Both the position numbers and the translations under genes were made by a program. Positions 8-42,464 of a stretch of 64,000 nucleotides of DNA are shown here, one piece after another (the first letter of the stretch is position 1; each line of letters begins with the position of its first letter). The stretch is taken from assembly GCA_030704615.1 (NCBI GenBank), contig CM060731.1, positions 90,458,001-90,522,000 on the forward strand, in the 5' to 3' direction. Below the pieces are notes generated by a model. It made no database searches. It worked only from the letters and a program-made list of their open reading frames with translations, and was not told the origin of the DNA. Origin of the DNA: Takakia lepidozioides. Its lineage: Eukaryota > Plantae > Bryophyta.

Positions 8-567
8 TTGGCACAATATTACCAGATCATGCGCATTTGGTTGCCAGTGGCAACTCGGACTAAGGTTCTTCCGAACAATCGACCCATTGAGGATCATCAT
101 TTTGCAAGGTACTGGTCTGAGGCAGGCACCATGTTGAAGGAATTAATTGCCTTCCAGGTTGTTCATGGGTACATCTACAACAAGACCAAGGAAGTATCTA
201 GTATTGTCATGGGCTGTGGATTATACCATGCTGCTTGTTTCATTGCACGTTATCACATTGAGCAGCAGAAGATGCAATCACGATTTCTGAGTTATTCCAG
301 TGGGGATCATTGGGTCTTACCTTCAGTTCTACCCCATATGTATCTGTATGATGCGAAAGTCATGATGCAGAAGGATTCCCAGCTTCGTTCATGGTTTAAT
401 TTGGCTTGGAACAACTTGGCCAAAGAGAAATTGGGCCCTGATGATATTTTCTATAAGGGACATGAAGCCTGGAAATACTTACACTGTTCCAAAGTCATTG
501 GCACACCTCTTATCTATACAGCCAAGGAGTTCAGGGAGTTCACTCATTTTGCTTGTAAGCAATTAAA
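8..567 (+). other. Unidentified ORF fragment, truncated by the MULE-A left terminus at ~568
   Basis: About 187 stop-free codons of protein-like composition run into the TE terminus; the remainder of ORF 8..754 is read-through into TE sequence. No family recognised. Confidence 0.3.
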
Positions 568-625
568 GGGCTGCTATTTCATGAGCGGCATGAGCATGAG
601 CGGAAAAAAAGAAAGCATGAGCGGG
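568..625 (+). repeat. Left terminal inverted repeat of MULE-A (CATGAG-rich)
   Basis: GCTATTTCATGAGC recurs at 23725, in reverse complement at 29975-29988, and at 52351. Confidence 0.85.
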
Positions 626-1489
626 CCGAATTGTGTCCACGGAAATAGGGTTAGGAGGCACGGAAATAGGGTCATGTGGACTTGTCATAGCAATGAAATG
701 CAATATTTTATTGCAAATTTGGTGGCAAGCCACGTCTATACAAGTGTGTCCTAACTGTCATAGCAGGAATGGGAACTACTCTCCTACACCTTCCGAGGAA
801 CTTGGCCCTCCTTCTTCCTCATCCCCCTCATCCCCCCCATCCTCCGAGCTCTGTGATGCATCGGTTGCAGTATGCCTCTCAAAAATGCCGTCCTCTCCTT
901 GGGGGACTGTCCACCTCACCTCCTGGGAATCTTCTGCCTCTTCTCCCCCACTTTCCTCAGCAGAATCCAACACAAATCTACGAGCCCGACGGGCTCTAAT
1001 AGCTGTTGCCTCCTCCCTCATCTTCATTTTCTTGAGGCTTGCCTCGTCTAAAATTTGCTGTACACGACTAGGTTCGGAACACCTCCTAATGGACACCGAA
1101 GCAAGCCGGGCAGCATAGGTAGGAAGGATGTAGTCCCTTTCTGGACTAGGCATGAAATCCCCCCTGGCACAAAAAGGCACGTTGCTCTTGCCCATGAACT
1201 CCGGTGTAGACGTCCCTCCTGCCGTACTTGGCATCCTACAGTAAGAACAAATCCACTTCAAGAATGTCAATACCAGCAGAAGCAGAAAGGGTTTTCAATG
1301 AAATAAGAGAGCGAAGGGAGGTGCCTCACGAAATCTGGAGGCAACTTACAATGCAACCACTCACTCGTACACCGGGGGCTCCTCGGCCTCGATCCCAACT
1401 TGTTCCTCCCCCTGCTCCTTCTCGGATTTTTCCTCATCCTCCAAGGATGCCTCTTCCTCTTTTGGCAGACGTTCAGCCGCTACAAGTTC

Positions 1490-2290
1490 CGAGTTGTGGA
1501 GGGCAGTATCTGGCTCGAAGGCAAACACATGCCTGTCGGACAACGTCCCTGCCCACATTGAAGCACCTGAGGAACAAAGCGGGCGGTTAATAGCTTGCGG
1601 CATGCAATTGCAATCGGGCCAGGGGACAAACTGAGCACGTGAAGGCTTACCCGTGCCGCATGTGAGGTCCAGAATCCGCCCTTGGACATCCGAGCACGTC
1701 TCCATGAGGGTTTGGATGAAAGCAGGGCTCCGGGTCCGGCTGTACCGCCACGGTTTGCCTGTCTTTGTGTCCTTCGGCATACTGGAGTGGGGCACATAGT
1801 TGTAGAGGACATCGTAGGTAACAGGGTCCACAGCGGCATCAACAAGACGACCGTCGTTGCGGAATTTGAACGTAGACCCTCTCTTCACAAAGCAATATGC
1901 CTCAAACACCAATGTCTGCACATCCAACAAAAGAGGGATCAACTCCGGGATCTTGTTTAGATACACCACAATATGAGGTGAATGCAATAGATTGATAACT
2001 TACACTTTGGCCCTCTGTTCGCAACCCCTGTGTATTGATGCAGAACCATTTTCTGAGGAGGACCGGGGTGACATTTTTCGGTGTCCACCTTGCCACCGCA
2101 TTCTCTGTGGTCTTCCCTCTTGTGGCAAGGACAACCACACATCCACCGTCATCCAGAAGCATCCCCGCCAGCCCAAACCCGGCTTTCCAGTAGTCCTTAG
2201 TAAACCTGTTCCAGGTGGGCACACCATCCAGGCCCTCCAGCAGCTCCCCATCTGGAATGTCGAGGAGAATCATGTCGCAAGCTCTCTCCA
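1490..2290 (-). pseudogene. Beta-class N4/N6 amino-methyltransferase-like domain (family A)
   Basis: Order is motif IV-like DMILLDIPD, then AGMLLDDGGCVVV, then motif X/I-like RSPAFIQTLMETCSDVQGRILDLTCGTG|ASMWAGTLSDRHVFAFE. This matches the K/P..L..I...S..GD.VLDPF.GSGTT..A....R...G.E pattern of N6_N4_Mtase enzymes. Confidence 0.7.
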
Positions 2291-3164
2291 CCTCAACCCC
2301 CCCCCCCCCCCCCGAGTGCTCTTGCAATCCGTGCTCACAGCCGTGAAGAATTCCATCATGGCTTCAAAACCAGGGGTGTCTTTAGGCTCTGTACCGGCAG
2401 CCCTCTTCTTGGCTTTCCCCTTCTGCTCCGCCAGAGACTTGTTGTGTGCCACCTTCTTCGCCCTGGCAGCGAGAGCGTCAAGGAAGCTCTCATTGACGCA
2501 TTGGATGATTGTTGGAGGTTCTAGCTTTGGCCTGTGCGTAAACGTCACCGCCGAATACCGCCGTGTAGGCTCGCCCTCAAATGCCAACTTCTTGGCAGAG
2601 CCAGTCCCACTCCGAACTGACTTGGGAACCCGGACGACCGGTGACTGGGTAGCAGCAACAACAGTCGCAGGACCTTGAACAAAGTCGTCGTCCGAGTCAC
2701 TCTCTTGGGTCCCCTCCTGCGCCTCCTCCGATGCCCCGATGGTTTTCTGTTTTTTGGGTGTTACTGTACTCACCTGTTTCCTTGTCCTTTTCCTTTGGCC
2801 TTTACTCTTCTCATTCAATTTCTCCTGAATTCCTGCCTGAGCAAGCTCTGCCGCTTTCCTGGAGTTCGCAAGCGCTTTTGCCTCTTTTGCACCCAGCGGA
2901 GGCAGCGGTGGGGCCCTCGCATGGGCCTCAGCATCCAGCTTCAATTGAAACTCGGCGGGGTCGAGCGAGCCGGGCGGAAGGTCCACATACCAAGGGCAAT
3001 CACGAAATGTTCCAGATGCCACTCCTTCACAATATCGTCTGTGTACATGGAGTCAGCCCCAGGGTTCCTCCATGCCAGGAAGAATGGTGGCTCGAAAGAC
3101 AAATGACCTTTCTCCAAAAGGGAGAACTTGCAGTACCTGCATTCATGAAAAACACAATGAGTCC

Positions 3165-3740
3165 CTGAACTGCAAATTCGGCACCATTTTCCCAGGTTGG
3201 GGCGGATCTGAGTGGCCTAGAAATGGAAAAATGGCGCCGAATTTCGGTTTTCGGTGACTGCCACCCTAGGGACTTAGCCATGGGAGCCCTGAACTGGAAA
3301 TTTGGCGCCATTTTTTCCGGTTTGGCCCGAAGATGGCTAAGTCCCAGAACGGCAATAGGGCCTAGAACTGGAAAAATGGCGCCGAATTTCCAGTTCAGGG
3401 CCAGCCACCCTAGGGACTTAGCCATTTTCGGAGCCCTGACTGGAAATTCGGCGCCATTTTCCCAGGTCCGGCCCGAAAATGGCTAAGTCCCAAAACGGCA
3501 ATAGGGCCCAGAACTGGAAAAATGGCGCCGAATTTCCAGTTCAGGGCCAGCCACCCTTGGGACTTAGCCATTTTCGGAGCCCTGACTGGAAATTCGGCGC
3601 CATTTTCCCAGGTCCGGCCCGAAATGGCTAAGTCCCATATGGCCTTGGACCTGGAAAAATGGCGCCGAATTTCCAGTTCAGGGCCAGCCACCTAGGGACT
3701 TAGCCTTTTCGGAGCCCTGATCTGGAAATTCGGCGAAAAA
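3165..3740. repeat. Tandem array of ~146-bp units made of two inverted half-units, each with a GGAAATTCGGCGCCATTTT motif; lies in a cargo-gene intron
   Basis: About 4 units; the same peptide (ALNWKFGAIF) is read on both strands. Confidence 0.9.
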
Positions 3741-4979
3741 TGCAAGGACTGAAAGGAAGGCATCGCGTATGTACCTGTACAGAAGGCGCATTGCTGCTTT
3801 TCCGCGTTCGGCTGGTCGGTGAACTCGTGGCTCCGGCGGGCATGTGGTATCTCCCGAAAGAATAGGTCGGTTTTGTAGAGCAGAAAGTACCTCGTCACAT
3901 AGTCGCGTAGGCTCTCTGCTGCAGGAGAAATCTCCATCTTGAACTGATGTGCTTGTGTGTCCAGCTGCTCTTGCGCATTCATCGTCACTTGTGGAGATTC
4001 CATCAGATCGCATTGCTGAAAAAATACAATGAATCCACCCCCTACAAGAGTAGAAGCGCCAAACGAAGCGTGGGGAAGTACCTGAAACCACCATGACATG
4101 CGGTTCATCCACATGTCGAATGTGGGGTCAGACAATTTGTCCGGTTTGGGGAAGCCCACATTTCCCTTGTACTTTGGGAAACCATTCTAGATTTGGAGCA
4201 CCGGGTGTGTCCAACCACCCAGCATATTTGTAAGCGCCAAACACCACAAAAACGAGTTGTTGCCACCACAATTTGGTTAAAAATGTATCACCTTTTCAGC
4301 ACCATCCACACAAGATGTGGCTAGACGATGGAGCTTCTCCAATGTCATCGTGGGCTTCAGAGCGCGGGAGTAGTGCTTCCCCACCTCCACCAAAAAGTCG
4401 GCACCAAGGGCGGGATCAGCTATGGCCACGTACTTTACCATCCGCGACTTGTACTTTATGCGGGCCCTCACCCTCCGCAGCTTTGAGATACGATTCGAGT
4501 GCCGGAGGGTTAGATTTCTTCTCCTTGACTCCATGTAGAACCTCCGCGCATGTGCCAAATCCTGCTGAATTTTGGTCTGTCAAGAATGCGCACATAAGAT
4601 TAGAGATCCTGCTCAACATTTTTTCTTCTATTGGGGGAGGAGAGACAGATAAGCTCAACAAAATGTCAGGAGCGTTACCCGAAATATGTAGTCCACCATG
4701 GCGTCCATGCTCAGCCTATACCAGGTTCTGTCTGCCTTTGCTTCCGACTTGCGCAGAGGTCGGCACTGAGCGAATTGGCAAACTCTTGCACCCCCTGCTT
4801 CCCGACATCCTTCACCCGGAAGAGCATATGGGACAAGTTGGTGGCAATGAAGGCATTCTCAATCACCCTGCAATGCCACATTTCCATCAAACAATTTTGA
4901 AATGGAATTTATAACAAATATGAGGATTCGCAATGAAATGAAATGACTTACAATCGGATGGGTCCAAAAGCAGTAACTT

Positions 4980-5383
4980 ACGAGTTGATGTCCGCCATTG
5001 CAGCTTTGAGAAGACTGCGATCTTTGGGCCCCGCAACCTTCAGCACAACACACTCCACGGCGAAATGCCAATCGAGGTCGTTGGGGTGGGCTTCGGCTAT
5101 GTGCTCCATCCATGCCAGGAGGCGATGATTGCCGTCCCACACGTAAAACATCTTTCCGGACAAGTGCTGGAAAAGAGGATCAGTAGCAATCGATCTCTCG
5201 AACTCCTCATTTCGCCTTTGCCAATGGGGACCTCATTTGTCCACCTCATCGGAAGTGTGGGCACGGGAAGCTCCGTGGTCGTTCTCAATGGAAACGTAAA
5301 ACGCGGCAGCACCCCATTCGATATCCATCCCGGAAAGAGAATTTCAGCTTGTCGATATCGCCTGGGAGGGCAGGTCTCACCAC
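4980..5383 (-). pseudogene. ParB/Sulfiredoxin-like (DGxHR) domain exon
   Basis: Manual translation: VVRPALPGDIDKLKFSFRDGYRM(fs)GAAAFYVSIEN...SGKMFYVWDGNHRLLAWMEHI. Bounded by ttgcag| and |gtaagt splice sites. Copy 2 reads WDDNHRL. Confidence 0.65.
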
Positions 5384-7329
5384 CTGCAAAGACACCAAGC
5401 GGCAAAGGGGAATTCGAAGCTTGGCCGGGTACACCATGCCCCCCAGCACCTGCCAATGTTGCTGTGGGTTGCCTCCAACATCTTGGCAGCGGCCAACTTC
5501 ATATCCGCCTCCGACATGACGTCTGCTGCAGAGGGGTTCTCCGGCAGCCCACCAGGACCGCCAAATCCAGCCTGTATGCTGCGGGTTTGGGGCCTGGGGA
5601 TGTCCGGGAGGATGTCCTGGTCAGAAAGCTCGGTGTCATCCTCCTCAACATGGTCAACCACCGGCGAACCACCTCGAGCACTCTCCCGTCTCTACTGCCA
5701 TCTCCCCGGCTTCACCTCGAACTTGCACAATCCGTGCTCTTTGTGGTGTTCTTTCCTCTCCTCCACTCTCCACCGTATGGGTAATTGCGGGGGCTGCTCT
5801 GTCCGCGATGGTGTAACCGGTGTGTTACTGCCTCTTTGTGGTGTCTTGGAGGGATCCACCGTCTCTGTGCGTCCCTCGCTTACATTGGCATCTGTCATTT
5901 GGGCACCCCTGGCCTCTTCAGTGGCCTTTTCTCTTTCCTCCTGGCTAGCCTTCTGTCTCACTTGTTTTGCCTCTCTTTTGCCCTCTCACGGGCTTTCTGT
6001 TTCTTACTAGGGCTAGCAGCAGGGGAGCCCTGGACGACCACCTTTGATTGAGGAGAACTGACACCCTCGCGCGCACTGCTCACTCCCCCCTCCGCAGCCC
6101 GTGACGGCTCTCTCGCGGGATTGCATGTGCTTAGCTTTCTTCTTCTTCTTTGCATGGGCGGGCCCTACTGCATGTGCATCAACAACCTCCATTGCCGGAT
6201 CTGCTGTCCTCACGTCCTCACGCCCTTCACCTGCCATGCCGCCTGCACCAACCTCCCCAATGCCTATTTGTCGTACCTCGCTTCAGGTCCTCCCGTCCAC
6301 CAACAAAAGGTTGAAGTTGCCCTCTCGCCCCAAGTTGGGCGATTCAAACATGCGATGAGTTGGAGCGGTCGATGATACCACCAGCGTGCCGGGCTCGTCG
6401 TCACTCTGTCATTCCCAAAATCGTCAGAACCAACATCGGTGCCAAAACCAGCATCGCAACGAGCAGCGCAACCACCATAGCAACAATCGTGGAACAACAA
6501 TGAAAACAAAACAAGTTTAGGAAGTATGGAGTGCCATGGAACAACAATGAAAACAAATCCAACCAATGCCTAAGAATGACATACACAAGCAGCCTTCTCC
6601 AGAGCTGCCGGCTTTGCACACGCATTGCAAACTATTTAAGGTTCACTCAACCGGTAATATGAAACACGATGAACAAATGATCAGGAATTCCATAAGATGG
6701 GAAAACAGGGTGAAATGTTTTGAAGGCACTTCATCTTTTCAGCTCAGCATGGATTTCCTTAATTTTTAACAACTCAGACCTTGATCATTCTTTGCAACAA
6801 CTGCTGCTTTTGCGATGCAGCCATACGCTTCCAGCGATGCCAGGATGAAGATGCAAAAACAAAGCGAAACAACAAAGCGAAAGCGAAAGCGAAAGAAAAA
6901 GCGAAAGTGAACAAAGTGAAAGCAGAAGTGGCTTGCCTGAGAGTACTCGGCTTCAGTTGGCGCGGGTTGTGAACAAGACACTGGAATCTCCTGCTGGAGC
7001 TTAAGTTTGGCCATGCGAGAGATTGGCCGTCGTCCGTAGTACAAAGCTTTAAACTTCCGCCGCAGTCTGGATGTGAGGTCTCTCTCAGGAGAGCCACGCC
7101 CTTCAGGCGGCATAAGTCCCAGCCAAAATGGAAAAAGATCTCAGTTTTTTGGGGTACATGCCTCGAATAGAAGTTCATCCAAGATTAGCATCAGATTTAG
7201 GGTACGTATCGATGAAGCCATGTGTCGCCAGCCCGAATAAAAACGGACGGCCGTGGACATTTAATGCCCAACTACGCAATTAAATGTCAGATGAAGCCCT
7301 CCCTGTCGGATGAAATATGATGCAACTCG

Positions 7330-8830
7330 GCCCGGAATTTCCAACATAGAGGTAATTTGGAGCGCAGCAGAAAAGAATTCCGGCGCCGGATTTCCATCCT
7401 GCAGGTAATTCGGAGCGCGGATGGATTGAAATCTGGCGCCGGATTTCCATCCGCCAGGTACGGCGGCGCGCAAAATTTCCGTCATGCAGGTAATTCGGAG
7501 CGCAGCAGGATGGAAATTCAGCGCCGAATTTCCATCCTGCAAGGTAGGGCGGCGCGCGAAATTTCCGTCACGCAGGTAATTCGGAGCCGGATGGATGGAA
7601 ATCCGGCGCCGGATTTCCATCCTGCCAGGTAGGGCGGCGCGCGAAATTTCCGTCACGCAGGTAATTCGGAGCCAGATGGATGGAAATCCGGCACCGGATT
7701 TCCATCCTGCCAAGTGGCGGCGGGCGAAATTTTTGCCACGTAGGTAATTCGGAGCCGGATGGATGGAAATCCGGCGCCGCATTTCCATCCTGCGAGGTAG
7801 GGCGGCGCGAATTTTCCGTCACGCAGGTAATTCGGAGCCGGATGGATGGAAATCTGGCGCCGCATTTCCATCCTGCCAGGTAGGGCGGCGCGCGAAATTT
7901 CCGCCACGCAGGTAATTCGGAGCGGATGGATGGAAATACGGCGCCGGATTTCCATCCGCCAGGTTGGTCGGAGAGCGGATGGATGGAAATTCGGCGCAAG
8001 ATTTCCATCCTGCCAAGTGGGGCGGCGCGCGAAATTTCCGCCACGCACTGGATGGAAATCCGCGCCGGATTTCCATCCTATATAGGGCAGAAATCCGCCA
8101 CGCGTAATTCGAGCGGAGGATGGAAATCCGCGCCGGATTTCCATCCTGTCAGGTAGGGCGGCGCGGGAAATTTCCGCCACGCAGGTAATTCGGAGCGGAT
8201 GGATGGAAATCCGGCGCCGGATTTCCATCCTGCCAGGTAGGGCCGCGCGCGAAATTTCCGCCACGCTCCGGATGGATGGAAATTCGGCGCGGATCCTGCC
8301 AGGTAAGGCGGCGCGAAATTTTAGCACGCAGGTAATTCGAAGCGGATGGATGGAAATCCGGCGCCGGATTTCCATCCTGTCAGGTAGGGCGGCGCGCGAA
8401 ATTTCCGCCACGCAAGTAATTCGGGGCGGATGGATGGAAATCCGGCGCCGGATTTCCATCTGCCAGGTTGGTCGGAGAGCGGATGGATGGAAATTCGGCG
8501 CCGGATTTCCATCCTGCCAGGTAGGGCGGCGCACGAAATTTCCGCCACGCAGGTAATTCGGAGCGGATGGATGGAAATCCGGCGCCGAATTTCCATGGCA
8601 GGTAGGCGGCGCGCAAAATTTCCGTCATGCAGGTAATTCGGAGCGGATCAGGATGGAAATTCGGCGCCGAATTTCCATCCTGCAGGTAATTCGAAGCCCG
8701 GATGGATGGAAATCGGGCGCCGTTCCATCCAGCAGGTAACTCGGATCGCTTGCGGATGGGAATTCGGCGCCGAATTTCTATTCGCCAGGTAAGTCGAAGC
8801 GCCGAATTGCCTTCCTGCAGGTAATTCTGA
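7330..8830. repeat. Tandem array, ~85-bp unit, ~17 copies, each with palindrome ATGGAAAT(C/T)CGGCGCCG(G/A)ATTTCCAT
   Basis: Unit starts at 7572 and 7657 (85 bp apart). A perfect 34-bp palindrome lies at 8649-8682. Confidence 0.95.
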
Positions 8831-8924
8831 GCGTGGCCGCTTGGTTTTTCGGAAAACAAACTAAACTGTTAGTTTTGTGGCTGAAGTCCACTTTTAGACG
8901 TTTTTCATGGAATCCTTGACTGCT

Positions 8925-10060
8925 AGCGGGAAATCCGAACGGCCCGGACGGAAATTCGGCGCCGTTTTTCCATCCTGGGAGATTTTTATATTGTCCAGTT
9001 TTGGGCCTCACCACCCGACCGGACTTCCTTTGAGGGGGCCCGGATGGAAATTTGGCGCCGAATTTCCATCCGGGGGATGGTCTCTGTCGGACAGGTGCCG
9101 GCCTCTCCGCCCGAGGCGACTTCATCCGGGCGTCCTCTGTTGGATATTCGGTGCCGAATTTCCGTCCGGGGGTTGAAATGTGATGGCCAGGTGCCGGCCT
9201 CTCCCCCCTCCCCGACTGCATCCGAACCGCCCCGCACGGAAATTCGGCGCCGTTTTTCCATCCTGGGAAGTTTTTATATCGTCCAGTTTTGGGCCTCACC
9301 ACCCGACCAGACTTCCTTTGAGGGGGCCCGGATGGAAATTCGGCGGCGAATTTCCATCCGGGGATGGTCTCTGTCGGACAGGTGCCGGCCTCTCCGCCCG
9401 AGGCGACTTCGTCTGAGCGTCCCCTGTTGGATATTGGTGCCGAATTTCCGTCCGGGGGTTGTAATGTGACGGCCTCTCCCCCCTCCCCGACTGCATCCGA
9501 ACGGCCCTAGATGGAAATTCGGCGCCGTTTTCCCATCTGGGGAGGTTTTTATGTCGGCCAGTTTTCGGCCTGCCCCCCCGACACAACTTCCTTTGGGGGG
9601 GCCCGGATGGAAATTCGGCACCGAATCTCCATCCAGGGGATGCTCTCTGTCGAACACGCGCCGACCTCTACGCCCGAGGCAACTTCATTCGGGCTTCCCC
9701 CATTGGATATTCGGTGCCGAATTTCCGTCCGGGGGTTGTAATGTGAGGGCCAGGTGGCGGCCTTTCCCCCGAGCCGACTGCATCCAAACGGCCTCGGATG
9801 GAAATTCGGCGCCGTTTTTCCATCCGGGGAGGTTTTTATGTCGGCCAGTTTTTGGCCTGACCCCCCGACACAACTTCCTATGGGGGGATCCAAATTGAAA
9901 TTCGGCGCTGAATTTCCATCCGGGGGTTTTTCTCTGTCGGACAAGTTCCGGCCTCTCTGCCCGAGGCGACTTCAAACGTGCGGCCCCTGCTGGATATTCG
10001 GTGCCGAATTTTCATCCGGGGGTAGTAATGTGACGGCACGGTGCCGGCTTCTCCCCTTCA
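8925..10060. repeat. Tandem array, ~280-bp unit, ~4 copies, three GGAAATTCGG(C/T)GCCG-type palindromic sites per unit
   Basis: GGAAATTCGGCGCCGTTTT recurs at ~8950, 9238, 9513 and 9800. Confidence 0.9.
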
Positions 10061-10277
10061 GCCGACATCATCTGGACGGCCCCCCACTTTCTGACTGCAT
10101 ACCGTTGGCAGTTATTGCGCAAAGACCAAGGGCCGCATTCCTGAGACAAGGTTTATTAACACTTTGACTGTGGATTTTTGAGATAGTTGGCTCCCTGGAT
10201 TTGGATGAGGCTTCGTCGCTCGGACAAATCGGCACCGCATTCCTTCCCATCGCTGCATCCCCCTTCTACCAGGGAGC

Positions 10278-11375
10278 TTGCCCGCACGCCATCCTGGGAG
10301 TCTTGTGTGCACATCTCCCATGGCGGAAAACCCGAGCGCTACAGTGTACTGCCCTCCTCACGAGCATAGAGCTTCATTTCCGTGCAGAGGGGACATCTGC
10401 CGGGTGATGGAGAAATATCTGTGCATTCGATACCACCTGAAACCGGGGTCGGTTTTTTTGGAGGAGGAAAGGAAGGACTCAAACGGCGCTGTTGTTGAGA
10501 GTATTGTTGTGCTCCACGATGATTTCGGCGATGGCAGGGAATGGCGAGTTCCACCATCAGACAGCGTCATATACAGGGCTGTTGGGGACTTCATTTGCCC
10601 GCCAAATGCACCTTCTATCCTGGCGCCTTCCACAAAACAATCCGCGAATCAGAGAGTGGGTACCTAGAAGTCCGCAACGAAGTAAATCCAGAGCCGAACC
10701 CATCCATGAAGACGAGCGAGAACCGGGTTGTTCACAACCTGTCCGACTCAGACAAGGTCATGGAAGTTCCGAGGTCGTCCTGGAGATCAGACAAGTCCTC
10801 AATGGACGTCAGTGGACGAGGGAGTCATATTCCCAGCACGAGCACCGCAGTTCGATCTATTCTTGAAATTCTGTGAGGGCTTCACATGGAGGGACACCGC
10901 TCGGAGCTGGCCGGGCTGGACTACAGCAAGTTCGTAATTAAATCGGTTACATGCCTTCCCGCAGACGTTGACGGTAATATCTTCTTTGAGTTCCCTCCTC
11001 GGACGGACTACTCGAGGGCGTCCGGAATGTTGACAGATATGGATAGAAAACATGATGGTCATCCTTGGTGCGTCACCAAAACCACCAGCATGAAGATGCT
11101 CGATGGTGTGCGGATGCGCTACGTTGTTTGTGCAGGCACGTTGCGGTGTTTCTCCCCAGCTTGCTTCCATTTTAAATCCAGAGGTCACAGGAACGAGACC
11201 GATTGGACAGGCACAGCTCATCAACCATTTTGAGCTCAGGAGAAGGTTCCGAACTCCACATTTAAGTGTGCGCATTGCAAAGAACCATCACATTGCATGT
11301 CTGTTTGTAATGCCAAGCAGTTCTATGTGTTGCACCGTTTCCCTGACCTCACCCGAGCTTGCATACACGTTGGGA
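10278..11375 (+). pseudogene. MULE-A transposase N-terminal part with GCM/WRKY-like Zn DNA-binding domain
   Basis: DRKHDGHPWCVTKTT...RYVVCAGTLRCFSPAC...RNETDW...FKCAHCKEPSHCMSVCNAKQF...TRACIHVG. Overlaps the 52245 copy, which continues into the DDE core. Stops and frameshifts present. Confidence 0.7.
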
Positions 11376-11895
11376 GCTAAAGTAAAAAATTCAATATGCA
11401 TCTCAGGGCCAAGTCTTATGAGAGGGAAAAACAGGCTGAAATAGGTCAAAGAAGAAGCTGCCCTCACCACATTGTCCTTGACCTTGTGTGATGATCCATG
11501 GAGGATTTGACCGACCATCACCTCTTGTGTGTGCTACTTGTGTACCCTCCCAAGAACCTGGTAAACATCAGGAAGAATACGCACAGGAGCCAAGAGCGCG
11601 TAGCAAAAGTGGGAGCGGCAGCGAGTACCAACAGGAGCCAAGAGCACGCAACAGAAGTGGTAGAAGGTGCGCGCAACGGATGATAGGGCTTAGTGAGGCG
11701 GAAAAAAAATCGACGCAAAAGGATTTGAGCACGCGATGTCGCGGCGGGTAAGTAGAGACCTTACCAGTACGCTACATACAAACATATGTAGCTTGCCCCC
11801 AAATATATATATATATATATATATATTACGAATTCTTCAGCCCCTTTCTATATACATAGTCTGTATGTGGGGGTATTAAATTACCCCCCTTCTGT

Positions 11896-14800
11896 TCACG
11901 CACGTGATAGGTACATTAAACCTTGGTGCACCCCCCCAGGAGGAGAGAGGGGGGTGTCCGGAGGGGGACGCCCATGAGAGTTATGGGAGGCTTTGATCTG
12001 TTGGAGTATTGAGGGAGTTGGGGCTGTTCTAAATTCAGGGAGGAGGTCTTGCTGGTTATGTAGGAAGAGTGAGCATGGGAAGTCGCAGTTAAGAGTACAA
12101 GAGGCTGTTGGGTGACAGAAGAGGGAGCGGAGGTGTATCAGATACCTACATGTTTTGATAGTGGCACGTGAATGTTTCAAGGTGAATTGACTTGGAGTTA
12201 AAAACCGAACACCGGTGGCTGTGGTGAGTTGGGTGAGGCTAGATATATGACGTGCTTTGAAGTAGGCGAGGATGAGTTTCTTTTGTCGTGGGTGTGAGGT
12301 TTCAAATTGTGAGAGAAATGGGCTGTTGAGCCAAGCACGTTCAAGTGGTGAAATAGTGTTTGGGTAACCTGGTAAGTCAGTTTGTACGCTAATCTTCATT
12401 TGGCGTAGGATGAACAGTGTACGGGCGGTGGGGGAGTGGAGGCAGGATTGGGGCTGGAGAGTGGGGAGGGAGTAGAATCCATTATATTTAGCAGCCAGGT
12501 GCTTAAGGAGCCCTCTGAAAATTAGTCCTAGGCGACCAGGGTCGTTGAGGGCTTCTTGAAGTTGTGAGCCTAGGGTGCGGGCATATGAGATAATCAGGGG
12601 GCTAGATCCGATTCCATAGCTATCTTGGGGAAGCTGAGTGAGGACGTTTGGGGTGCTAGTGGTTAGACCACATATTCATTTGGTGAGTTGGATAATCTTT
12701 TTGTCGAGTTGTTTGATGTCGGGTAGAGAGAAGGGAGCTGCGTGAAAGGCGTATTGGACTTGTGGATTTTCAACTTTTTGGATGATAGCTAGTTTGGGGC
12801 AGATGGAGACTGGGATTTGAGCAAGGCTATGCTTTTGTCGGTTAATTTAGAAAATGTGGTGCTTTTCTGTATATGCCAGGTGAAGGAGGGGACCAGTTGT
12901 ATGCCCAGATAAGTGTAAGGCTCATCTGGGCCTAGGAAATGGAAGGGTTTTTGTTGGTAATGTATGTGGAGTTTACAGTGTGATGCAATCGTGGATTTTG
13001 TGAGCTTATTGTGGTGAGTGGCAGCAGTGACTGCGCATTTGTGAAAGCTTAGCTCCGTACCCGCCCACTGGTTAAAGCGGGATAGCTTGTCCACCTGTCA
13101 GTTGAGATGTTGAGGTTTGTGTGCAAGAATGGCAAGGTCATCAGCGGAAAATTGCTGGAAGATGTTTTGTATTGATAGCCAAGGTTACCACGGGCCAGCC
13201 AACGCAACAAGGGTTCAAGGAAGATGATAAAGAGGTAGGGGCTCAGTGTGTCACCTTGAATGGTGCCACGTTGTATAGGGATAGGAGGGGGTGGAGCCAT
13301 AGTATGATCCGGAGTATTCGGTGATACTGTTGGTGTAGATGTTACCAATGAGTTGAATAGCATCTATAGGGTATCCTAGATCCGCCATTATAGCCAGCAA
13401 GCGGGGATGGTCCACGGATCCGAAAGCATTTTTGAAGTCGCGGATAGTATGGTAAATATTGAGATGGGAGGTCCATTCACGTTTCTTGGTCCTGGTGAGG
13501 TACCCCCCGTTTTGTTTTGAGCGTGCGGTTTGGGGGAGGTAAGGAGAGGTGGAGCACGTGGCTAATACACTTTTAGTCATTTCTTGTATTGTAGATGTGA
13601 GTGTGATCTTTGCTTCAATCCATGTAGCATCGGGGGATATCTGTAGGTTGGTATCACAGAGTATGTGGGATAGTTTATGTATGAAGTGTGCGGAGACTGG
13701 GTGGAAATGCTTTTGGAATGTCTGAATGTTACAGTAAGATATAAGTGAGAGAATTCTTGGGTGAGGGGGAGGGGAATGTACATCGGGGATGGACGGAAGG
13801 GAATAAGGGAGGACGAGAGAGAGACAGAGATCGGATAGTGGTCCGAGTTGCATAGACTATTGATGTGAACGTAACTACGAAGGTATGTCGGGGTTACGTT
13901 ACAGGTTTTGAGGTAGAATCCGTCCAATAGGCTTAAGGAGGAGTAGTTAAGACCACCTTGTCTGGAGTAATGGTAGTCCGCATGGATGTATTGGAATTGC
14001 AAGTGCTGGATGAATCGGGCCCATTCGTGGTCCACTGAGGATGGGGGTTTGTGGGTACCGTTGTGTGAGTGGCCTAGCAAAGCAATGTCCCTGTTAAAAT
14101 CCCCTGCCAATATGATATGATGATGTTGGTTATCTGGGTGCAGGGTGGTTGTTTGAGAGATAGTGTTTAATATGTCGGGTATGAGGGGTAGGTCATCTGT
14201 ATGTGACGACATATAGAGATGTATGAGGGTGATAGGGCATAGTGCTGGAGGATGTAGTTGGATAATTTGGAGGTGAGATTGGAGAGGAATGGGTACAGTT
14301 ATTTTTGTGATGGTGCTGGGAGAGTGATGTGTATGGAGAATACCTAGTGCAACCCCCCCCCCCCCCCTAGTGGATTTGTATGGTGCCGAGTGGCGTAAGG
14401 GGCATTGCTGGGCAGTCAGGGGGTTGCCATATAAGAGGTAGTAATCGGGTAATAGTTTATTTATGTAAGAACTGCTAGTATTACTGTTGTGTAATTTGGT
14501 TTCTTGGAGGAGGAATATATGTGGTTGTGAAGAGTTGGTGAAAAGATGTAGTAGGCTTTGTATACTAGTAGCCAATGACCCCACATTCCAAGAAGTGATG
14601 GTGAGTGCGCCGTTGTGGGTGTCGGGGGTGGTGGGGGGTGTGGTGGAAGAGGGGGCGGGTGGGGGTTCCGCAATTTGGGGTGCTATGGTAGGGGGATCAT
14701 ACCCGGGTATCGGGGTGACTGCTTTGAGTGTGGCAGAGAGGCTGTCAATAGAGAGGAAGGGGAATTTATTGGTAAATGAGGTGGTGGTCCTGATCCGTCG

Positions 14801-15500
14801 TGGTTAAAGTTGCTAGATGGTCTCCAAGGACCTTGTGTATAACCCCAGTTTTGGAATTTAGGAGATTGAGGGAGTTGTGGATCTCTGATAAGTAGTGGGG
14901 AGGGGCCAAGTAATTGTGGGCGAGTGGAGGCAGCTTTTGTAATTGGCGGAGGAGGGAGCGGACTCGGGAGGTGGAGTGGGAGTAGAGATACCCATTGCAT
15001 GTCTCTGGGAGAGGGCCGGAAATGAGGATGATAAGGGAGAAGAGAAGGTGTGATGTGGGAAAAGTTTTGAGGTTCTGGAGGGTTTTAGAGAGAGCTAGGT
15101 AGCAGTTGGAAGGAAGTCCAAATGTCGTGATTTGTTGTGTGGGTATATGGTCAGTGGGTTGGTCGCGTGGAAAAAAGGGGGTGAAGTGGTCTTTGAGATG
15201 GCGGTAGTAGTGTGTGAGTGACAAAGTGTCCGGCTGGAAGTATAGAGAGTATCTTTCTTGGGAGTTCGTGGAGAGTTCCATGATAATATTGCTAATAGTG
15301 ATAGGCCATGGGTTTGGATGTATATCGCCACATCGTAGCAATATTAGGTTTAAGCATGCATTGTTGTATGCGATATCTGGTGTGGGGGGGTGATGGTAGT
15401 AGTGTTTGGATTTGTTTAATGATAGATGGTATCGGCCATGAGGCCTGTGGGTGAGGGGTTGGTGGTTTCTATAGGCGAGTATCAAAGGTCTACATGGCAA
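11896..15500 (-). mobile_element. Non-LTR retrotransposon copy A (Dualen/RandI-like): APE endonuclease, internally deleted RT, 3' truncated
   Basis: APE motifs SWNV, LLQETKL, GGVAL, LAGDFN, LDGF, SDHYPI at 14600-13830. A deletion junction at ~13440 joins the linker to DFKNAFGS. RT motifs RGTIQGDTLSPYLF and YTYLGI. Homologous to 15530-18050. Confidence 0.9.
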
Positions 15501-16126
15501 ATAAGGTGTAGCGGGGTGCCGCTCCCCTGGACCTGCCCCAAACCTCCCGCTCTAAACAAAACGGGGGATATCTTACCCGTTCACAAAAGCGGGCCTGGAC
15601 CTCCCACCTAAGCACCTATCACACTATCCACAGAGCTCTCACCGTTATTCCTAACTCTTCCACCCTCCCACTACACAGAGACTGGCGTTCGATCCCCGTA
15701 TCTCATGCCTAAACCCCCTGTCTGTCTGCAGCCCGATCATGCCCCCTCCCAACGACCCCTCCAACCTTCCTAGCTGGATTGCTGCCCTCTCCAAGCTGGG
15801 GATCAGAGACACTAAAAAAGCCGCCTACGTTATTACTAAACAAAAAGCCACGGCTGATTAAAAAAAAAAAAAAAAAAAGTTTCATCCTTTGGCCAATTAC
15901 TACATGACCACCCCAAAAAAGCCCATAAAGCTATTTTCAACCCTGCTCTAAACCCACCCATTGACTAACTGCTTTCCACCCCTCATGACATAAACAATGA
16001 AATATGGATTCAAGCCTCATCCTCCTATACTCCCACACTACGAACTGCCTGCACCCTATCGTATACACCCCTGACTACGTATGTAAAGTCCGCCACTACC
16101 CCTAGCACGATTTAGACAGCTTTTCA

Positions 16127-17713
16127 TTGGAGAACTGTGGTTCTCCATCAGACCTCATCCATGACGCCTTCACTCTTGATATCTTTGAATCCTGCCTCAA
16201 AGCCCTTCCCAAAGCTAAAGCCCCTGGCCCTGATTTGATTCCAAATGCTATTCTACAAGCTCTCGACCCTGTACTTCACTTCCTCCTCTTCAAATTCTTT
16301 ACACTTTGCTACCAACTCCACCGGATCCCACACACATGGAAGCATAGCCGCACCATTCTCCTCTTCGAGAAAGGCGACCCTACGGGTCTTAGCAACTACA
16401 GACCCATTGCTCTCGCTAACACTATCTATAAACTATTTACCAGCACCCTTACCAAGATGTTGTCCAACTATGGTGAACACCACCGCATTCGTAGCGACCC
16501 GCAAGAAGGCTTCCGCGCCACGCGTAGCACTACCAGACAAATACAATATGTGTTATCCGCCCTAGAGGACGCCAAACTCACAAAACAAGATATATATCTC
16601 CTATATATCGACTTCAAAAATATTTTCGGCTCCTTAGACCACCCGCGTCTACTCGCCATTATGACAAACCTAGGTTACCCATCAGATGCGATACAACTTA
16701 TCGACAATATTTACACTAACAACTCCACGGAATATACAGGCTCATATTATGGTTCCACCCCTCCCATCCCGATTCTACGAGGTACTATCCAAGGCGACAC
16801 CCTTACTCCTTATCTCTTTATCATCTTCCTTGAACCTTTGCTCAGATGGATTGCACACGGCAAACTTGGATACCAATACAAAACTTCCTCAAACGAAATT
16901 TCTACTGCCGCTTACGCGGATGACCTTGCCATCCTTGCGCACAAACCCCAACACCTCAACCGGCAAGTTGAAAAACTATCACGCTTTAACCAATGGTCTG
17001 GAATGGAATTAAGTCTTCATAAATGCGCCGTCACCGCAGCTACCCACCGCAGTAAGCTTACCAAATCTTTTATTGCGTCAAACTGCAAACTATACATCCA
17101 ATACCAGATCAATCCATTTCCCTTCCTAGGCCCGGATGAACCCTACACATACTTAGGTATTCAACTTGTCCCCTCGCTCACATGGCACATGCAGAAAATT
17201 GCCACACTCATCAAACTAACTAATAAAAGTTTGGCTCTCCTCAAAGCCCCCATAGCCATCAGGCCCAAACTCTCCCTCATAGAATCCGTCCTAAAACCAC
17301 AGGTCCAATACTCCTTCCATGCGGCTCCTTTCTCCCTTCCTGACATCATCCAAATCGACAGACAAATCATCCAACTCACTAAGCGCATTTGTGGTCTCCC
17401 AACTAGCTCTCCCAATGCCCTCACTCAACTCCCCACGGACAGCTATGGCATCGGTACTAGTCCCTTAATAATATCATACTCGCGCACTCTTGGCTCTCAA
17501 CTACTCGAAGCCCTCAACGACCCGGGTCGTCTAGGTCTCATCTACCGTGGGCTACTCAAACACCTGGCCTCCAAGTATAATGGACTCCACTCACAATCTT
17601 GCCTTCATTCCCCTACCGTCCGCTCCCTATTCATACTCCGCCAGATGAAGACCAGTGTGCAAACCGATCTCCCTGATTACCCCAAATCCATATGTCCCCT
17701 CGAACAGGCCTGA
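16127..17713 (+). pseudogene. Non-LTR reverse transcriptase domain
   Basis: KAPGPD, NYRPIAL, QEGFR, LYIDFKNIFGS, RGTIQGDTLTPYLF, AYADDL, YTYLGI. Confidence 0.97.
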
Positions 17714-18282
17714 CATACTAGCCCTTTTCTCTCCCAATTCGAACGCAAGTTCCCCCGCCAAAAGATACTTATCATCAAATATTTCAAAGGATGACTCATC
17801 ACGACCCTCACCCAACTCACCACCGCCACCGGCAACCGCCTCTTGACCCCCCCAGAATTCACCCTTAAATACTCTAGAGCCACTGCCAAAACCTGCAGAT
17901 TCCTTAACCACCTCTGTAGCCTATTCTGTGACCTATCGGCCTCATGCACCCTTGAGTGTGACCTACCCTGTCTTCTTTTCCCCCACAGTCCACAGGATCT
18001 ACTTCCCGCTTTTCGTACCGCCCATGCCCCCTCTATCCTACAAATGCTTAAATCCTCTCATGCCGAGGATACTGGTACCATCGACACCCTCCCCTGTGCC
18101 ACATCCCACTCCCCCTCCTACTCCTCATCGCATACCCAGACCCCTAGTCGCCCATCACCCCTTCACTTGCACACTCAACCCCCCCCACCCTCTCCCTACT
18201 TCTTACAGCACCGAGGATAACATAATTCCCCCCTCCCCCCCGTCGTGTTCTCCCACTCTCAATGCCGCTCCTAACAACTCCA

Positions 18283-18435
18283 TTACCTTCATCATTGAAG
18301 ACATTCTCGGGGTCAGAACCCAGACATCAACTGACGCGTTTGGCGCTTCATGTCTGGATACGTACTACCTTTGCAAATGGGGCAGTTTTTCCTCAGATGA
18401 CAACACTTGGCAAATTGAGGACGACCTCTTTGGTT
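18283..18435 (+). pseudogene. Chromodomain-like segment in the LINE ORF
   Basis: FIIEDILGVR...YYLCKWGSFSSDDNTWQIEDDL fits Y.VE.IL..R...YLVKW.GY....NTWEPE..L. Confidence 0.75.
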
Positions 18436-18919
18436 CACACGATGATTGTGACCCCATCCACAACCTCACCCTCCTTACTGCGTTCCATAAACGTACCAAC
18501 ATTAACTACCTGGTCAACACACACTCACCAACAACTTGTCTCCCAGGCACAACTCACAAATGCCCGCAACATTCCCTACCCGCTCGTCAATCCTTACATC
18601 CACATCAACACTACCGAATGTAACCCTGATAAAGACATTGCCCACGACTCCCCCTTAATCTGTCAGGGCCCTCAATGGTAAAAAATCTACGCCCATAACG
18701 GCCGATACATTGGCAAAATCCCCAATGATCGGTTAGCGTGGCTCTGGCATAAATACTCTACATACCAGATACTGCCACCCAGAGAAGATTTCGCTACTGA
18801 AATCTGCTGGATATTAGACCGCTACCTTAAGGACATCCCCTCCAAAAACCCCGCGTCCAATCCAAACTAATTCAAGCGCACACTCATAGTACTATCCCCA
18901 GAGAATTATCTAGCCTTCT

Positions 18920-19170
18920 AATATCCTTCTTCCAACTTACTCACTCCTAATACTCTAGCCCACTCACGTGCCCCATGGAACTTACCTCATATGCTAGCCC
19001 ACACCATAGAGACTACATCTTTGGCGCCACTGGTCTTGCCACCCAGCATAGGTGGTCCGATCGCGGCTTTGCTCACCCTCCTGACTCCCAAATACAAGAA
19101 GCCCTCCAATGGGTTCGTACCGCTGCCCACTCCTCCCCTTCTGCCTGTATCATTCTCCTACTTACACAAC
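18920..19170 (+). pseudogene. PCIF1/CAPAM-like adenine methyltransferase-fold segment in the LINE ORF
   Basis: LISFFQLTHS*YSSPLTCPMELTSYASPHHRDYIFGATG...GFAHPPD...SACIILLL aligns by eye with the PCIF1 pattern FASPLNC..YCS..D..FGS.G...ANPPF...FIVFIP. Confidence 0.6.
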
Positions 19171-19599
19171 AAAGGCCTCCAGACAACCCCACCCCTCTTC
19201 TACAACTCCCCCCTAGCGTCACCCTTCTAGCCACCTTTGAACCAAACCAACTACTATATGAACCAGCCCTCCCCTCCCCTAAATACCTCCGACGCTTAGA
19301 ACCCACCACTACATCACTACTATTTGTCCAACACACCCATCCCACCTCCACGCCCATTACCCTCCCCTCTACCTTACACCACTTACTCGTATGCACATGG
19401 GGGCTGAAAGACTCCATTACCCCCAACACACATCCTCTTCCCTCTACATCTTGCTCCTTACCCATCATGTTTCCCAGAGTCAACCCAAGCAAGGCCTGGA
19501 TAAGGGCGTTACCGCGCCCTCCTCCTGCCCCCCTCCCGCCCCCTACTGACCCACCGGTCTCACACCTACGTCTGCCGCTCAAATTCTCTCTTTCACACT

Positions 19600-19990
19600 C
19601 CCACTATACAGATGGCTCCCAATCCGGCTCTAACGCTGGCTATGGTGTTTTTCACGCTGCTAATAACCGTGGGGTAGCTCTTAGACTTCCAGGCCCAGCC
19701 ACTATATTACGCGCTGAGCTTATGGCAATCTTTGAAGCACTCTCCCAGCTGCCCTCCTTCTCCCCCCCCATACTACACTTTCACAGACAGCCTTATCTCA
19801 CTATTTCTTCTTCGCAACCACCTCTCCAGCCCCTCATGCCACCTCCACCACCCAGACCGGAACCTCATTGCAGCTATCATTAACCGTGCGGCTTCCATTA
19901 ATCAACCCATACACTTTCTCAAAGTTCGCTCCCGCACTGGTATCACCGGTAACGAAAATGCAGATCTCCTCACCCAGGCGGGGGCCGCCC
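19600..19990 (+). pseudogene. RNase H domain
   Basis: YTDGS, RAELMAI, (fs) FTDSL, KVRSRTGITGNENADL. Confidence 0.92.
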
Positions 19991-20205
19991 AACCCCCACT
20001 GGATCCCACGGCCGACCCCATCCATATTGCTCACACTCACCCATTCTGGCTAATTCACCCAGTACTAGGACCCCCTACTACCAAGCCCATACGTAACCTC
20101 AAATCCACTCTCACACGCGAAGCACACAAACAAGCCTCAAGCTCTACCAGCCATACCAAAGCCCATATCCAAAAATAGACACAATCTACAGTTCTTCACC
20201 ACAAA

Positions 20206-21036
20206 TTGTCAAACTACTTTTGGCACACCAAGACTGTCACCGACGCGCAAATCCGCCAAACACTCCAATTTTGTTACGCCCAATACATGGGACACCAACG
20301 CAAGCACACTTTCTGGCCACGCCTATTCCCATCCCCCAACTGCCCATTATGCTCACACACACATACACTACGTGACACCTGGCCCCACCTCCTCAGTCAG
20401 TGTACTCACCCTGTTATACATGGTCTCCACGTCACTCGCCACAATCACACAGTTTGGCACATCCATAAACTTCTCATGTCCAGATCAGAAACCAGATGGT
20501 TCTCACTCATCAATGCTGGCACCTACCAAGGCCGACCCCCTGACCACATTGTCCCTTGTTGGATATTTCTGTGTACTTGTCATCACTCACCCTGTACCTG
20601 TCCCTCTCAACTCTGTCTGGATACCCTACTTGTCCAAGGCTTACCCATCAATGCCCCGCTACCCACTTCCTCTTCCCCGGAACTAACCATTCACTTCGTT
20701 GAATTCATATACTGTCATGACCGATACCCAGCCCCTTTCACCCTAGAGAAACGACAAAAATATGCCTCCCTCATCCTCGCCATCTGCCAACGTGGGTGGC
20801 GCACCGGGCCCCTATCAGTTATCACAGTCGATACTAGAGGTGGGATTCATACCGCCAGTATAAACGCGTTACACAACAATCTTAAAATCCCTATCCCCCC
20901 GATCTACAAATGCTTTAAAACCATCCACCTCATTGTGCTTCGATCCCTCACTGCCATCATCACCAATAAGCGACAACTCAAGTCCAACCCCTCTATGGTA
21001 CCTCAGGGTACCCTGGGGTACCCCCGGGTATCCTAG
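20206..21036 (+). pseudogene. CCHC Zn knuckle plus restriction-like (PD-(D/E)xK) endonuclease
   Basis: CPLC..DTWPHLLSQC, RHN, (P>L)DTLLV, IHFVEFIYCHD, EKRQKYASL, GW, ITVDTRGGIH: the R2/CRE/Dualen-type RLE pattern. Confidence 0.8.
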
Positions 21037-21109
21037 GCACCGCTACCCTACTTACTACCTCCCCCTGGTTACTCGGTGTCCCCTGGACACCTGTTTTATT
21101 TATAGGGCC

Positions 21110-28488: not shown

Positions 28489-28489
28489 A

Positions 28490-40840: not shown

Positions 40841-40844
40841 AGGC

Positions 40845-42445: not shown

Positions 42446-42464
42446 AAATGGATAATTCCTGTGC

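Follow-up and report, generated by a model that had tools for sequence, protein, structure and literature searches.

A bryophyte lineage of Mutator-like transposons with a spliced accessory gene for predicted ParB-like and methyltransferase-like domains beside palindrome arrays

Why should a large DNA transposon carry a spliced gene whose product appears to combine a ParB-like domain with a methyltransferase-like domain, and what has this gene to do with the palindromes around it? The question is raised by a stretch of 64,000 nucleotides of Takakia lepidozioides DNA (assembly GCA_030704615.1, contig CM060731.1, positions 90,458,001 to 90,522,000 of the forward strand), which was analyzed at its full length and is called the window here. 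A first-pass annotation of the letters alone had placed a giant Mutator-like transposon with such a gene at 568-11375. The window belongs to a plant-like genome with a GC content of ~49% and is rich in transposons; it contains several decayed members of one lineage of large bryophyte Mutator-like DNA transposons. Intact members of the lineage carry two divergent genes, one of which encodes a transposase of ~1000 amino acids whose N-terminus is rich in Cys and His and whose C-terminus bears a SWIM finger. The intact product of the other, the accessory gene, is predicted to comprise a ParB/Srx-fold domain, a conserved middle region, a charged linker, and a domain with a beta-class methyltransferase fold. 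A lineage-specific palindrome of 22-30 bp is present in 6 to 50 copies, located between the genes, in an intron, and near the element ends. The features of the window are collected in Table 1.

A conserved accessory module of Mutator-like elements

Three paralogous loci on different chromosomes of Ceratodon purpureus carry the same arrangement. In each, a spacer of several kb with 9-17 copies of a 22-bp palindrome separates an intact ParB open reading frame (ORF) from a divergent transposase that shares 30-50% identity with the window pieces; the middle region and methyltransferase exons follow the ParB ORF on the same strand. Similarity among these loci ends 1.2-1.5 kb past the methyltransferase stop codon, at a common terminus with different flanks, and the loci are therefore transposon copies. 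Short TCTACGC repeats precede this terminus and resemble the CATGAGCGG repeats of the window. Subterminal short tandem repeats ending in GAGCG are likewise found on both sides of the comparison, as TAGAGCG at 16020-16095 of Ceratodon locus L001 and as CATGAGCGG at 580-625 of the window; the other DNA is unalignable. At the nucleotide level, the window and Ceratodon share no similarity, and their GC contents are 49% and 41-43%, respectively. We also considered the Ceratodon genes as domesticated host genes; the retention, at all three loci, of the divergent transposase, the palindromes, and the common terminus with different flanks led us to reject this. The same layout occurs in a further genome (locus L012), where the transposase has long intact ORFs and a SWIM-like C-terminus and the palindrome is peculiar to the locus, and the Logan contig L002 carries the ParB, middle, and methyltransferase parts in order.

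Between the Ceratodon paralogues, the ratio of nonsynonymous to synonymous substitution rates (dN/dS) is 0.06-0.10 for the ParB part and 0.08-0.11 for the methyltransferase part, at dS values of 0.5-1.1. These low ratios rule out the neutral decay of a captured gene. The first-pass annotation had proposed a conserved module rather than a one-off Pack-MULE capture, MULE standing for Mutator-like element. This proposal is borne out by the same order and orientation in the three Ceratodon loci and L012, by the gene pair in L002, and by the purifying selection between copies; moreover, the cargo is tied to transposons outside the window and is not a single-copy host gene. Collectively, we regard the gene with high confidence as an accessory module of the transposon.

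Within the window, the left end of the first copy (copy 1) lies at ~566-570. It is common to copy 2, which begins at 23717, and it recurs in inverted form at 29993 and 52344, over a terminal repeat of ~45 nt. The left terminal inverted repeat predicted near 568 is thus confirmed. Copies 1 and 2 share the opening terminal sequence GG(G/T)(C/T)TGCTATTTCATGAGCGG..., followed by CATGAGCGG repeats, and the sequence of 568-5202 recurs at 23720-28489 with an identity of 95-96%. On either side of copy 2 stands the 9-bp direct repeat TCCCGCTCC in perfect form, at 23708-23716 and 29994-30002, and the evidence for target-site duplication comes from this single copy. No terminus is present at 11375, which had been taken as the boundary of the element: the transposase fades at ~11440, a long interspersed nuclear element (LINE) begins at ~11896, and no right terminal repeat of copy 1 was found in the 64-kb window.

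The transposase start of copy 1 shows 30-46% identity at the protein level to the transposase starts of Ceratodon and L012, and no continuation downstream was found in the window. SWIM fingers are located at 28.6-29.2 kb, 50.1-50.7 kb, and 42.9-43.2 kb, none of them within copy 1. The finger of the related copy at 49997-52242 scores 20.3 bits in Pfam against a cut-off of 19.6, and the nearest Atlas clusters to that transposase are all MULE, with a score of 0.90. Of the divergent GCM-like/MULE/SWIM transposase first assigned to the element, the plus-strand start therefore stands, whereas the MULE-like core and the SWIM finger belong to other copies. The label GCM-like could not be verified, as neither Pfam nor Atlas returned a match on the transposase N-terminus; Atlas also gave none for 51459-51902. 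Pfam MULE (PF10551) had no match on the window ORFs or the intact L012 ORFs at E values up to 10, and the L012 transposase shows a D ... D ... CxxH pattern by eye. Collectively, the 9-bp duplication, the terminal repeats of ~45 nt, the SWIM fingers, the MULE Atlas clusters, and the D...D...CxxH pattern point to a Mutator-like element. Some caution in the superfamily call is suggested by the red algal Plavaka elements, which were first misclassified as MULEs owing to shared accessory genes (bioRxiv 10.1101/2025.02.11.637652).

The layout had also been reported to recur in two more diverged families of the window, B and C. What recurs is the C-terminal half of the methyltransferase-like domain along with palindromes and fragments of the transposase (45063-45371 in family B, 42568-43175 in family C), but these are remnants, in which the profile search detected neither a ParB part nor the motif IV region. 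The family C remnant (39147-44175, within 37890-45420) is nested in the family B palindrome cluster, with three B palindromes on each side (38529-39062 and 44226-44506).

Predicted domains and exons of the accessory gene

The fold tests were run on relatives, and the window exons are tied in by family-profile matches. An exhaustive profile search with the three window paralogues gave 148 relatives, mostly short fragments along with some long proteins, including hypothetical proteins of Ceratodon purpureus. For the METHYLTRANSFERASE-like domain, the window exons matched the family hidden Markov model (HMM) A2 with E=4e-25 in the C-terminal half (1424-1918) and E=2e-11 in the N-terminal half (2019-2303). 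When profile A2 was searched against all PDB sequences, only beta-class enzymes were matched (M1.HpyAVI, E=1.7e-6; CcrM, E=0.009), and the two domain halves align colinearly, with the DPPY region at one end and motifs X, I, and II at the other. The AlphaFold model of one relative (P0049:266-570) has a mean predicted local distance difference test score (pLDDT) of 83 and a predicted template modeling score (pTM) of 0.86. In Foldseek, its best ~40 matches are all beta-class or related N6-adenine/N4-cytosine (N6A/N4C) DNA methyltransferases, with CcrM first (E=7e-14). Phage DNA methyltransferase families also match (E=7.5e-6). Pfam gave no match on the raw window ORFs, NCBIfam nothing beyond a far sub-threshold match to CcrM, and a word-indexed protein search with the methyltransferase ORF no match; the same kind of search with P0149 returned the Ceratodon paralogues only and no longer model including the ParB part. 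A single-ORF phmmer search against the PDB yielded only histone H2A and sucrose hydrolase, which were set aside as noise. Collectively, profile and model indicate that the domain has the permuted beta-class N6A/N4C amino-methyltransferase fold, with the motif order IV ... X, I, II.

The catalytic motif is D-[LIVA]-P-[D/E] in all relatives and D-I-P-D in copy 1 (within 2019-2303), and it aligns with the DPPY of M1.HpyAVI and CcrM. The motif I region reads D-L-T-C-G-T-G in the window and D-x-x-A-x-T-G in the relatives, compared with F-x-G-x-G in the class. The acidic residue that follows strand 2, the E of ...GIE, has its aligned counterpart in the glutamate of ...ALE.D. Beta-class methyltransferase motifs had been read here from the start; their order, profile, and fold (DIPD, then DLTCGTG/ASMWAG...FEPD) hold up, but the catalytic motif is D-x-P-[D/E] and not (D/N/S)PP(Y/F/W). 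Whether such a non-canonical motif would support ordinary amino-methylation is uncertain.

The ParB-like family comprises 36 collected members with a near-invariant ...PLCRL..VRP...DV..L...F..GY..G...YV..., later followed by ...F.V.[D/E]GNHR..AW..., in which G, N, H, and R are invariant or nearly so and form a GxxR-type motif. The window carries DGNHR at 5122-5136, a motif already noticed in the first pass. The model of the domain (pLDDT 82) was placed by VIA-align closest to Caulobacter ParB (7bm8), with a Z score of 9.6 and a root-mean-square deviation (rmsd) of 1.8 Å over 93 residues, followed by Myxococcus and Bacillus ParB, Noc, and KorB. All 19 chains with Z >= 8 are of the ParB/Noc/KorB/PadC type. 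Similarly, the top Foldseek ranks are ParB/Srx-fold proteins only, with weak E values of 0.03-0.3. Pfam, phmmer, and the profile search against the PDB gave no sequence match for the family, and the only sequence trace was phrog_1033, a 'ParB-like partition protein' (E=0.1). Part of the window exon (5312-5425) matched HMM A3 with E=3e-9. The match of 4984-5232 to the same HMM is circular because this ORF was a row of A3; independent support comes from its 43% identity to Ceratodon over 82 amino acids. The middle region of the protein had no match among solved structures by sequence. Fold comparison and family profile thus agree with the earlier call, and the N-terminal part of the accessory protein is modeled with a ParB/Srx fold.

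The gene is spliced and spans 1361-5428 on the minus strand. Contigs of run X1 cover it in two records, one on 1358-1564, 1649-1915, and 2004-2302 and another on 2347-3132 and 3771-3833. They leave out 1565-1648, 1916-2003, and 3137-3774, all with GT..AG on the minus strand, whereas the contigs of runs X3 and X4 cross all three stretches unspliced. The multi-exon structure proposed at first is thereby supported, and the gene is spliced and transcribed as judged from contigs of a run labeled RNA by guess. The spliced reading yields an uninterrupted methyltransferase-like domain ending at 1364. At the intron directly after the motif I 'TG', many relatives read into the intron, and family C has no intron there. 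A G17 tract leaves the linker ORF in a different frame from the methyltransferase ORF; G9, G12, G15, or G18 would bring them into one frame. At this tract, the X4 contigs are 8 letters shorter and the X3 contigs 7 shorter (DNA runs, other copies), which may be either genuine length variation or homopolymer misassembly. Copy 2 likewise carries such a tract near 25430.

Compared with alignment A3, the ParB exon of copy 1 contains a 1-nt indel near 5313 and a TGG>TGA change at 5233-5235, where the relatives have Trp. A separate RNA-like contig lies on 5117-5428, the first part of this exon. The loose ends of the RNA-like contigs were searched for in the window and not found, so the transcripts derive from other copies; they carry no information on the sequence upstream of 3833 or around 5117-5428. 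All conserved exons of the accessory gene are colinear, and in two lineages, a GT..AG join right behind the ...DIN codon would stay in frame. From this sequence evidence, the ParB-like and methyltransferase-like domains are likely to reside on one polypeptide.

Palindromes and the possible role of the accessory protein

In the window, 51 hits of the 22-bp palindrome core GGAAAnnnGGCGCCnnnTTTCC compare with an expectation of 0.03. The intergenic array is 2.7 kb long, with its 26 cores at 7374-9917; together with the related array at 3214-3735, it substantiates the ~3 kb of palindrome arrays noticed in the first pass. The intron arrays of the two copies hold 7 and 9 cores, respectively, four cores lie just inside the right end of copy 2, and a few lie near other element ends; none is present in the left subterminal region. 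The palindrome sequence is specific to the lineage. Family B carries six copies of GAGTGCGTyGACGCACTC, family C ~15 of GGGAAGTCTGTGCAGACTTCCC, Ceratodon CAGnCTACGTTAACGTAGnCTG, and L012 TACCTCCTCGTTTGACGAGGAGGTA, which makes five different palindromes in five lineages. In Ceratodon, copy-specific variants alter both half-sites together (CTACGTTAACGTAG versus CTGCGTTAACGCAG), as is expected for a dimeric binder. With position kept, sequence replaced, and symmetry preserved, the palindromes bear what reads as the signature of a co-evolving dimeric DNA-binding protein. In two distant lineages, accessory-gene introns downstream of the ParB exon also contain some palindromes (8257-9088 in L009, 3214-3735 in the window).

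We favor a reading in which a dimer of the accessory protein would bind the palindromes in the way that ParB binds parS, and the binding would place the methyltransferase-like domain on the element's own DNA. There, the element might be marked or shielded in cis and so stay transcribed or mobile despite host silencing. We give the binding step an even chance; the full sequence of binding, delivery of the domain, and cis marking or shielding against silencing we place slightly lower. Putative true DNA methylation by the protein is doubtful. A more unusual chemistry, in which the ParB-like domain clamps at private palindromes and the D-x-P-[D/E] domain sets a non-canonical mark, or flips and holds a base, so as to block silencing as a self-targeting epigenetic writer, we consider unlikely. 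The idea of self-binding and self-modification has already been proposed for algal elements (PMC12477816; bioRxiv 10.1101/2025.02.11.637652).

Several observations weigh against cis marking or shielding by the accessory protein. In bacterial ParB, the helix-turn-helix domain reads parS, not the N-terminal domain; downstream of the ParB-like domain, we looked for a helix-turn-helix or other known DNA-binding domain and detected none. Palindrome cores are present in the subterminal regions 29442-29764 and 52666-52752, the usual place of transposase-binding sites. The accessory-gene copies in this window are defective, no transcript bridging the ParB and methyltransferase parts was seen, the Ceratodon gene models begin after the ParB exon, and the 'RNA' label of run X1 is the guess of a tool. 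Regarding the enzyme, Pfam N6_N4_Mtase is the sole recurrent match, and its best score is 20.8 bits (E=4e-4, P0049) against a cut-off of 26.7. Moreover, motif IV has neither the second proline nor the aromatic residue for stacking on the flipped base. In the (D/N/S)PP(Y/F/W) motif, which positions the target amino group, both belong to the catalytic motif (PMC4738411).

The missing DNA-binding domain and the cores next to the terminal repeats (29442-29764, 52666-52752) would also be explained if the palindromes were sites of the Cys/His-rich N-terminal domain of the transposase, serving synapsis or as a transposase sink, with the ParB-methyltransferase protein not aimed at them. Its role would then lie, for example, in DNA processing, in NTP-dependent (nucleoside triphosphate-dependent) clamping during transposition, or in interference with host factors. 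In agreement with this, two deletion derivatives, copy 2 and family C, have lost much of the accessory gene or the transposase, yet their palindromes, their termini, and the SWIM end are retained. However, most palindromes are far from the ends, directly upstream of or inside the ParB gene in every lineage, and none occurs in the left subterminal region. Furthermore, ParB-family proteins classically act on clustered palindromes, and a ParB gene with inverted-repeat arrays is also reported from red algal elements with an unrelated transposase (bioRxiv 10.1101/2025.02.11.637652). We consider transposase sites, and an accessory role of this kind beside them, fairly unlikely.

A different possibility concerns the enzyme itself. 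The methyltransferase-like domain could be a pseudo-enzyme in a structural binder or clamp that coats or bridges the arrays without a covalent mark, and the clamp might then shield them from silencing factors or tether the excised element. The family-wide replacement of (D/N/S)PP(Y/F/W) by D-x-P-[D/E] would fit, as would the GxxR-type motif retained in the ParB-like domain, and inactive paralogues with degenerate motifs are known in the superfamily, METTL14 among them (PMC4738411). The altered motif is nevertheless strongly conserved and the whole domain evolves at a dN/dS of ~0.1, while the kept elements of the S-adenosylmethionine (SAM) side, the motif I glycine and the acidic residue in ...ALE.D, fit a cofactor binder with altered chemistry as well as a dead one. 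Both the pseudo-enzyme and its shielding or tethering function are improbable in our view. Finally, the disabling changes in both window copies, and the reduction of the domain to one half in families B and C, could suggest that a host or horizontally acquired gene was taken up in an ordinary Pack-MULE-type capture and is in neutral decay beside unrelated satellites. This is already contradicted by selection (dN/dS 0.06-0.11) and by synteny, with the same order and orientation in five lineages and at least three genomes. The transcripts are spliced, and the palindromes change by lineage yet keep position and symmetry; we consider such a capture extremely improbable.

If the accessory protein were indeed a self-targeting writer with unusual chemistry, the lineage would represent a transposon-encoded counter-silencing system made from prokaryotic parts and active in land plants. 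To our knowledge, VANDAL/VANC is the only case in which experiments have established transposon accessory proteins that recognize their own element and modify it. The ParB/methyltransferase type, which came to notice in algae in 2025, is now found in bryophytes, where it is multi-copy, spliced, transcribed, under strong purifying selection, and accompanied by palindromes of each lineage's own. Apparently intact copies in Ceratodon purpureus, a laboratory moss, make DNA affinity purification sequencing (DAP-seq), methylation calling, and transgene work practical. The family-wide motif change raises the further question of what the fold does with an acidic residue in place of a base-stacking one.

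Relation to known systems and other features of the window

In Ectocarpus, Dinatale et al. (Genome Biol 2025) described a 1104-residue protein with ParB-like and N4C/N6A methyltransferase domains, encoded opposite the transposase of the 21.5-kb element Sola1-1_Ec32, and proposed that it binds and epigenetically modifies its own element (PMC12477816). By published description, this element resembles ours in that both are giant transposons with a ParB-like and an N4C/N6A-type domain opposite the transposase. In contrast, its host is a brown alga, it belongs to the Sola1 superfamily, and palindrome arrays are unmentioned in that text (PMC12477816). Petroll et al. (2025) reported PAG2, an N6A methylase with a SET domain, and PAG3, a ParB domain with a 2-oxoglutarate (2OG) oxygenase, in red algal Plavaka, Mutator, and Zisupton elements. 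Tandem inverted-repeat arrays adjoin PAG3, self-binding and self-modification were proposed, and the PAG2/PAG3 cassette moves between transposon superfamilies (bioRxiv 10.1101/2025.02.11.637652). The shared features are giant DNA transposons with genes for a ParB domain and an N6A methylase, and inverted-repeat arrays by the ParB gene; however, PAG2 and PAG3 are two separate proteins, whereas the bryophyte form is apparently one gene, without oxygenase or SET, in a land-plant host. Such accessory genes in brown and red algal transposons (PMC12477816; bioRxiv 10.1101/2025.02.11.637652) overtake the initial impression that a system of this kind was not known to be described. A literature search for a bryophyte or land-plant report of a ParB/methyltransferase transposon accessory gene found none, and Iyer et al. 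list no such land-plant clade (PMC4738411). By architecture, the bryophyte genes appear to be a land-plant extension of the accessory system recently recognized in algae.

VANC of the Arabidopsis VANDAL MULEs is an accessory protein with an anti-silencing role, acting on short motifs that are multiplied within the non-coding tandem repeats of its own element, and motifs and protein co-diversify by family (PMC10398659). It has neither a ParB nor a methyltransferase fold, and its motifs are short and non-palindromic; the resemblance is one of function only. At the level of domains, CcrM, M1.HpyAVI, M.RsrI, M.PvuII, and the bdelloid N4CMT share the permuted fold with the motif order IV ... X, I, II and include the best sequence and structure matches. 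Unlike these enzymes, the bryophyte domain carries D-x-P-[D/E], falls below the Pfam cut-off, is interrupted by introns, and is embedded in a eukaryotic multi-domain protein. Similarly, the N-terminal (CTPase) domain of ParB, Noc, and KorB corresponds to the ParB-like domain in fold (Z 8-9.6, rmsd 1.8-2.9 Å), in the [D/E]GNHR GxxR-type motif, and in the location of the gene beside clustered palindromes. It differs in that the bryophyte domain has an insertion of ~45 residues, no Pfam or PDB sequence match, and no detected adjoining helix-turn-helix.

Table 1. Positions of transposon features in the 64,000-nucleotide window
Feature	Positions	Strand	Remarks
Left terminal inverted repeat, copy 1	566-612	+	GGGCTGCTATTTCATGAGCGG..., then CATGAGCGG repeats; aligns with 23717-23780, 52344-52410, and the reverse complement of 29925-29993
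Last coding exon with stop codon	1361-1564	-	Methyltransferase-like domain after motif I (ASMWAG...HVFAFEPD); spliced X1 contig, HMM A2
Intron, 84 nt	1565-1648	-	GT..AG; directly after motif I 'TG'; position common to the family
Exon, middle of methyltransferase-like domain to motif I	1649-1915	-	KPWRY...ILDLTCGTG; X1 contig, HMM A2
Intron, 88 nt	1916-2003	-	GT..AG; X1 contig
Large exon	2004-3136	-	Lys/Glu-rich linker ORF (ATG at 3022) and N-terminal half of methyltransferase-like domain; X1 contigs on 2004-2302 and 2347-3132
G17 homopolymer (poly-Gly coding)	2297-2313	-	Between linker ORF and methyltransferase ORF, out of frame
Intron, 638 nt	3137-3774	-	Holds array of 146-bp period (3214-3735) with 7 palindrome cores
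Partial exon upstream of the array-bearing intron	3775-3833	-	X1 contig
Conserved middle-region exon	4280-4579	-	VAIADPALG...LTLEKLHRLAT; homologous to the start of annotated Ceratodon proteins (alignment A5)
ParB/Srx-like domain exon	4984-5428	-	PAKLRIPLCRL ... YVWDGNHRLLAW ... AAMADIN; broken by 1-nt indel and TGA
Two tandem arrays	7330-10060	.	Periods ~84/137 and 96/287; 26 copies of GGATGGAAATyCGGCGCCGrATTTCCATCC
N-terminal part of divergent transposase, Cys/His-rich	10089-11440	+	Truncated, LINE from ~11896; 80% identical to 48250-49522
Copy 2	23717-29993	+	Internally deleted, non-autonomous: left 4.7 kb, SWIM end of transposase, and right terminal repeat
Family B, C-terminal half of methyltransferase-like domain, two exons	37969-38514	-	tblastn 32% identity, E=1e-18; HMM A2 E=2e-19, 1e-9
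Family B palindrome AATTGAGTGCGTyGACGCACTCAATT	38529-39062	.	3 copies; 3 more at 44226-44506
Family C, C-terminal half of methyltransferase-like domain, without intron	40404-40745	-	tblastn 29% identity, E=2e-8
Family C array, period 106, ~15 copies	40863-42459	.	Palindrome CCGGGAAGTCTGTGCAGACTTCCCGG
Transposase of related copy	49997-52242	-	Core 51081-51902, SWIM finger 50140-50688; 41-50% identity to Ceratodon and L012 transposases
Terminal and subterminal region of another copy	52344-52811	+	Palindrome cores at 52666-52752

Outside these features, two diverged retrotransposons without long terminal repeats (non-LTR) occupy 11896-21100 in opposite orientation (11983-13440 versus 18061-16609, 70% identical) and adjoin the truncated transposase of copy 1; their GC skew is strong and opposite in sign. 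At 57594-60305, plus-strand ORFs have the look of an ordinary plant host gene, with a resemblance by eye to the NPH3/RPT2 family, and this is the sole apparent non-transposon gene seen in the window.

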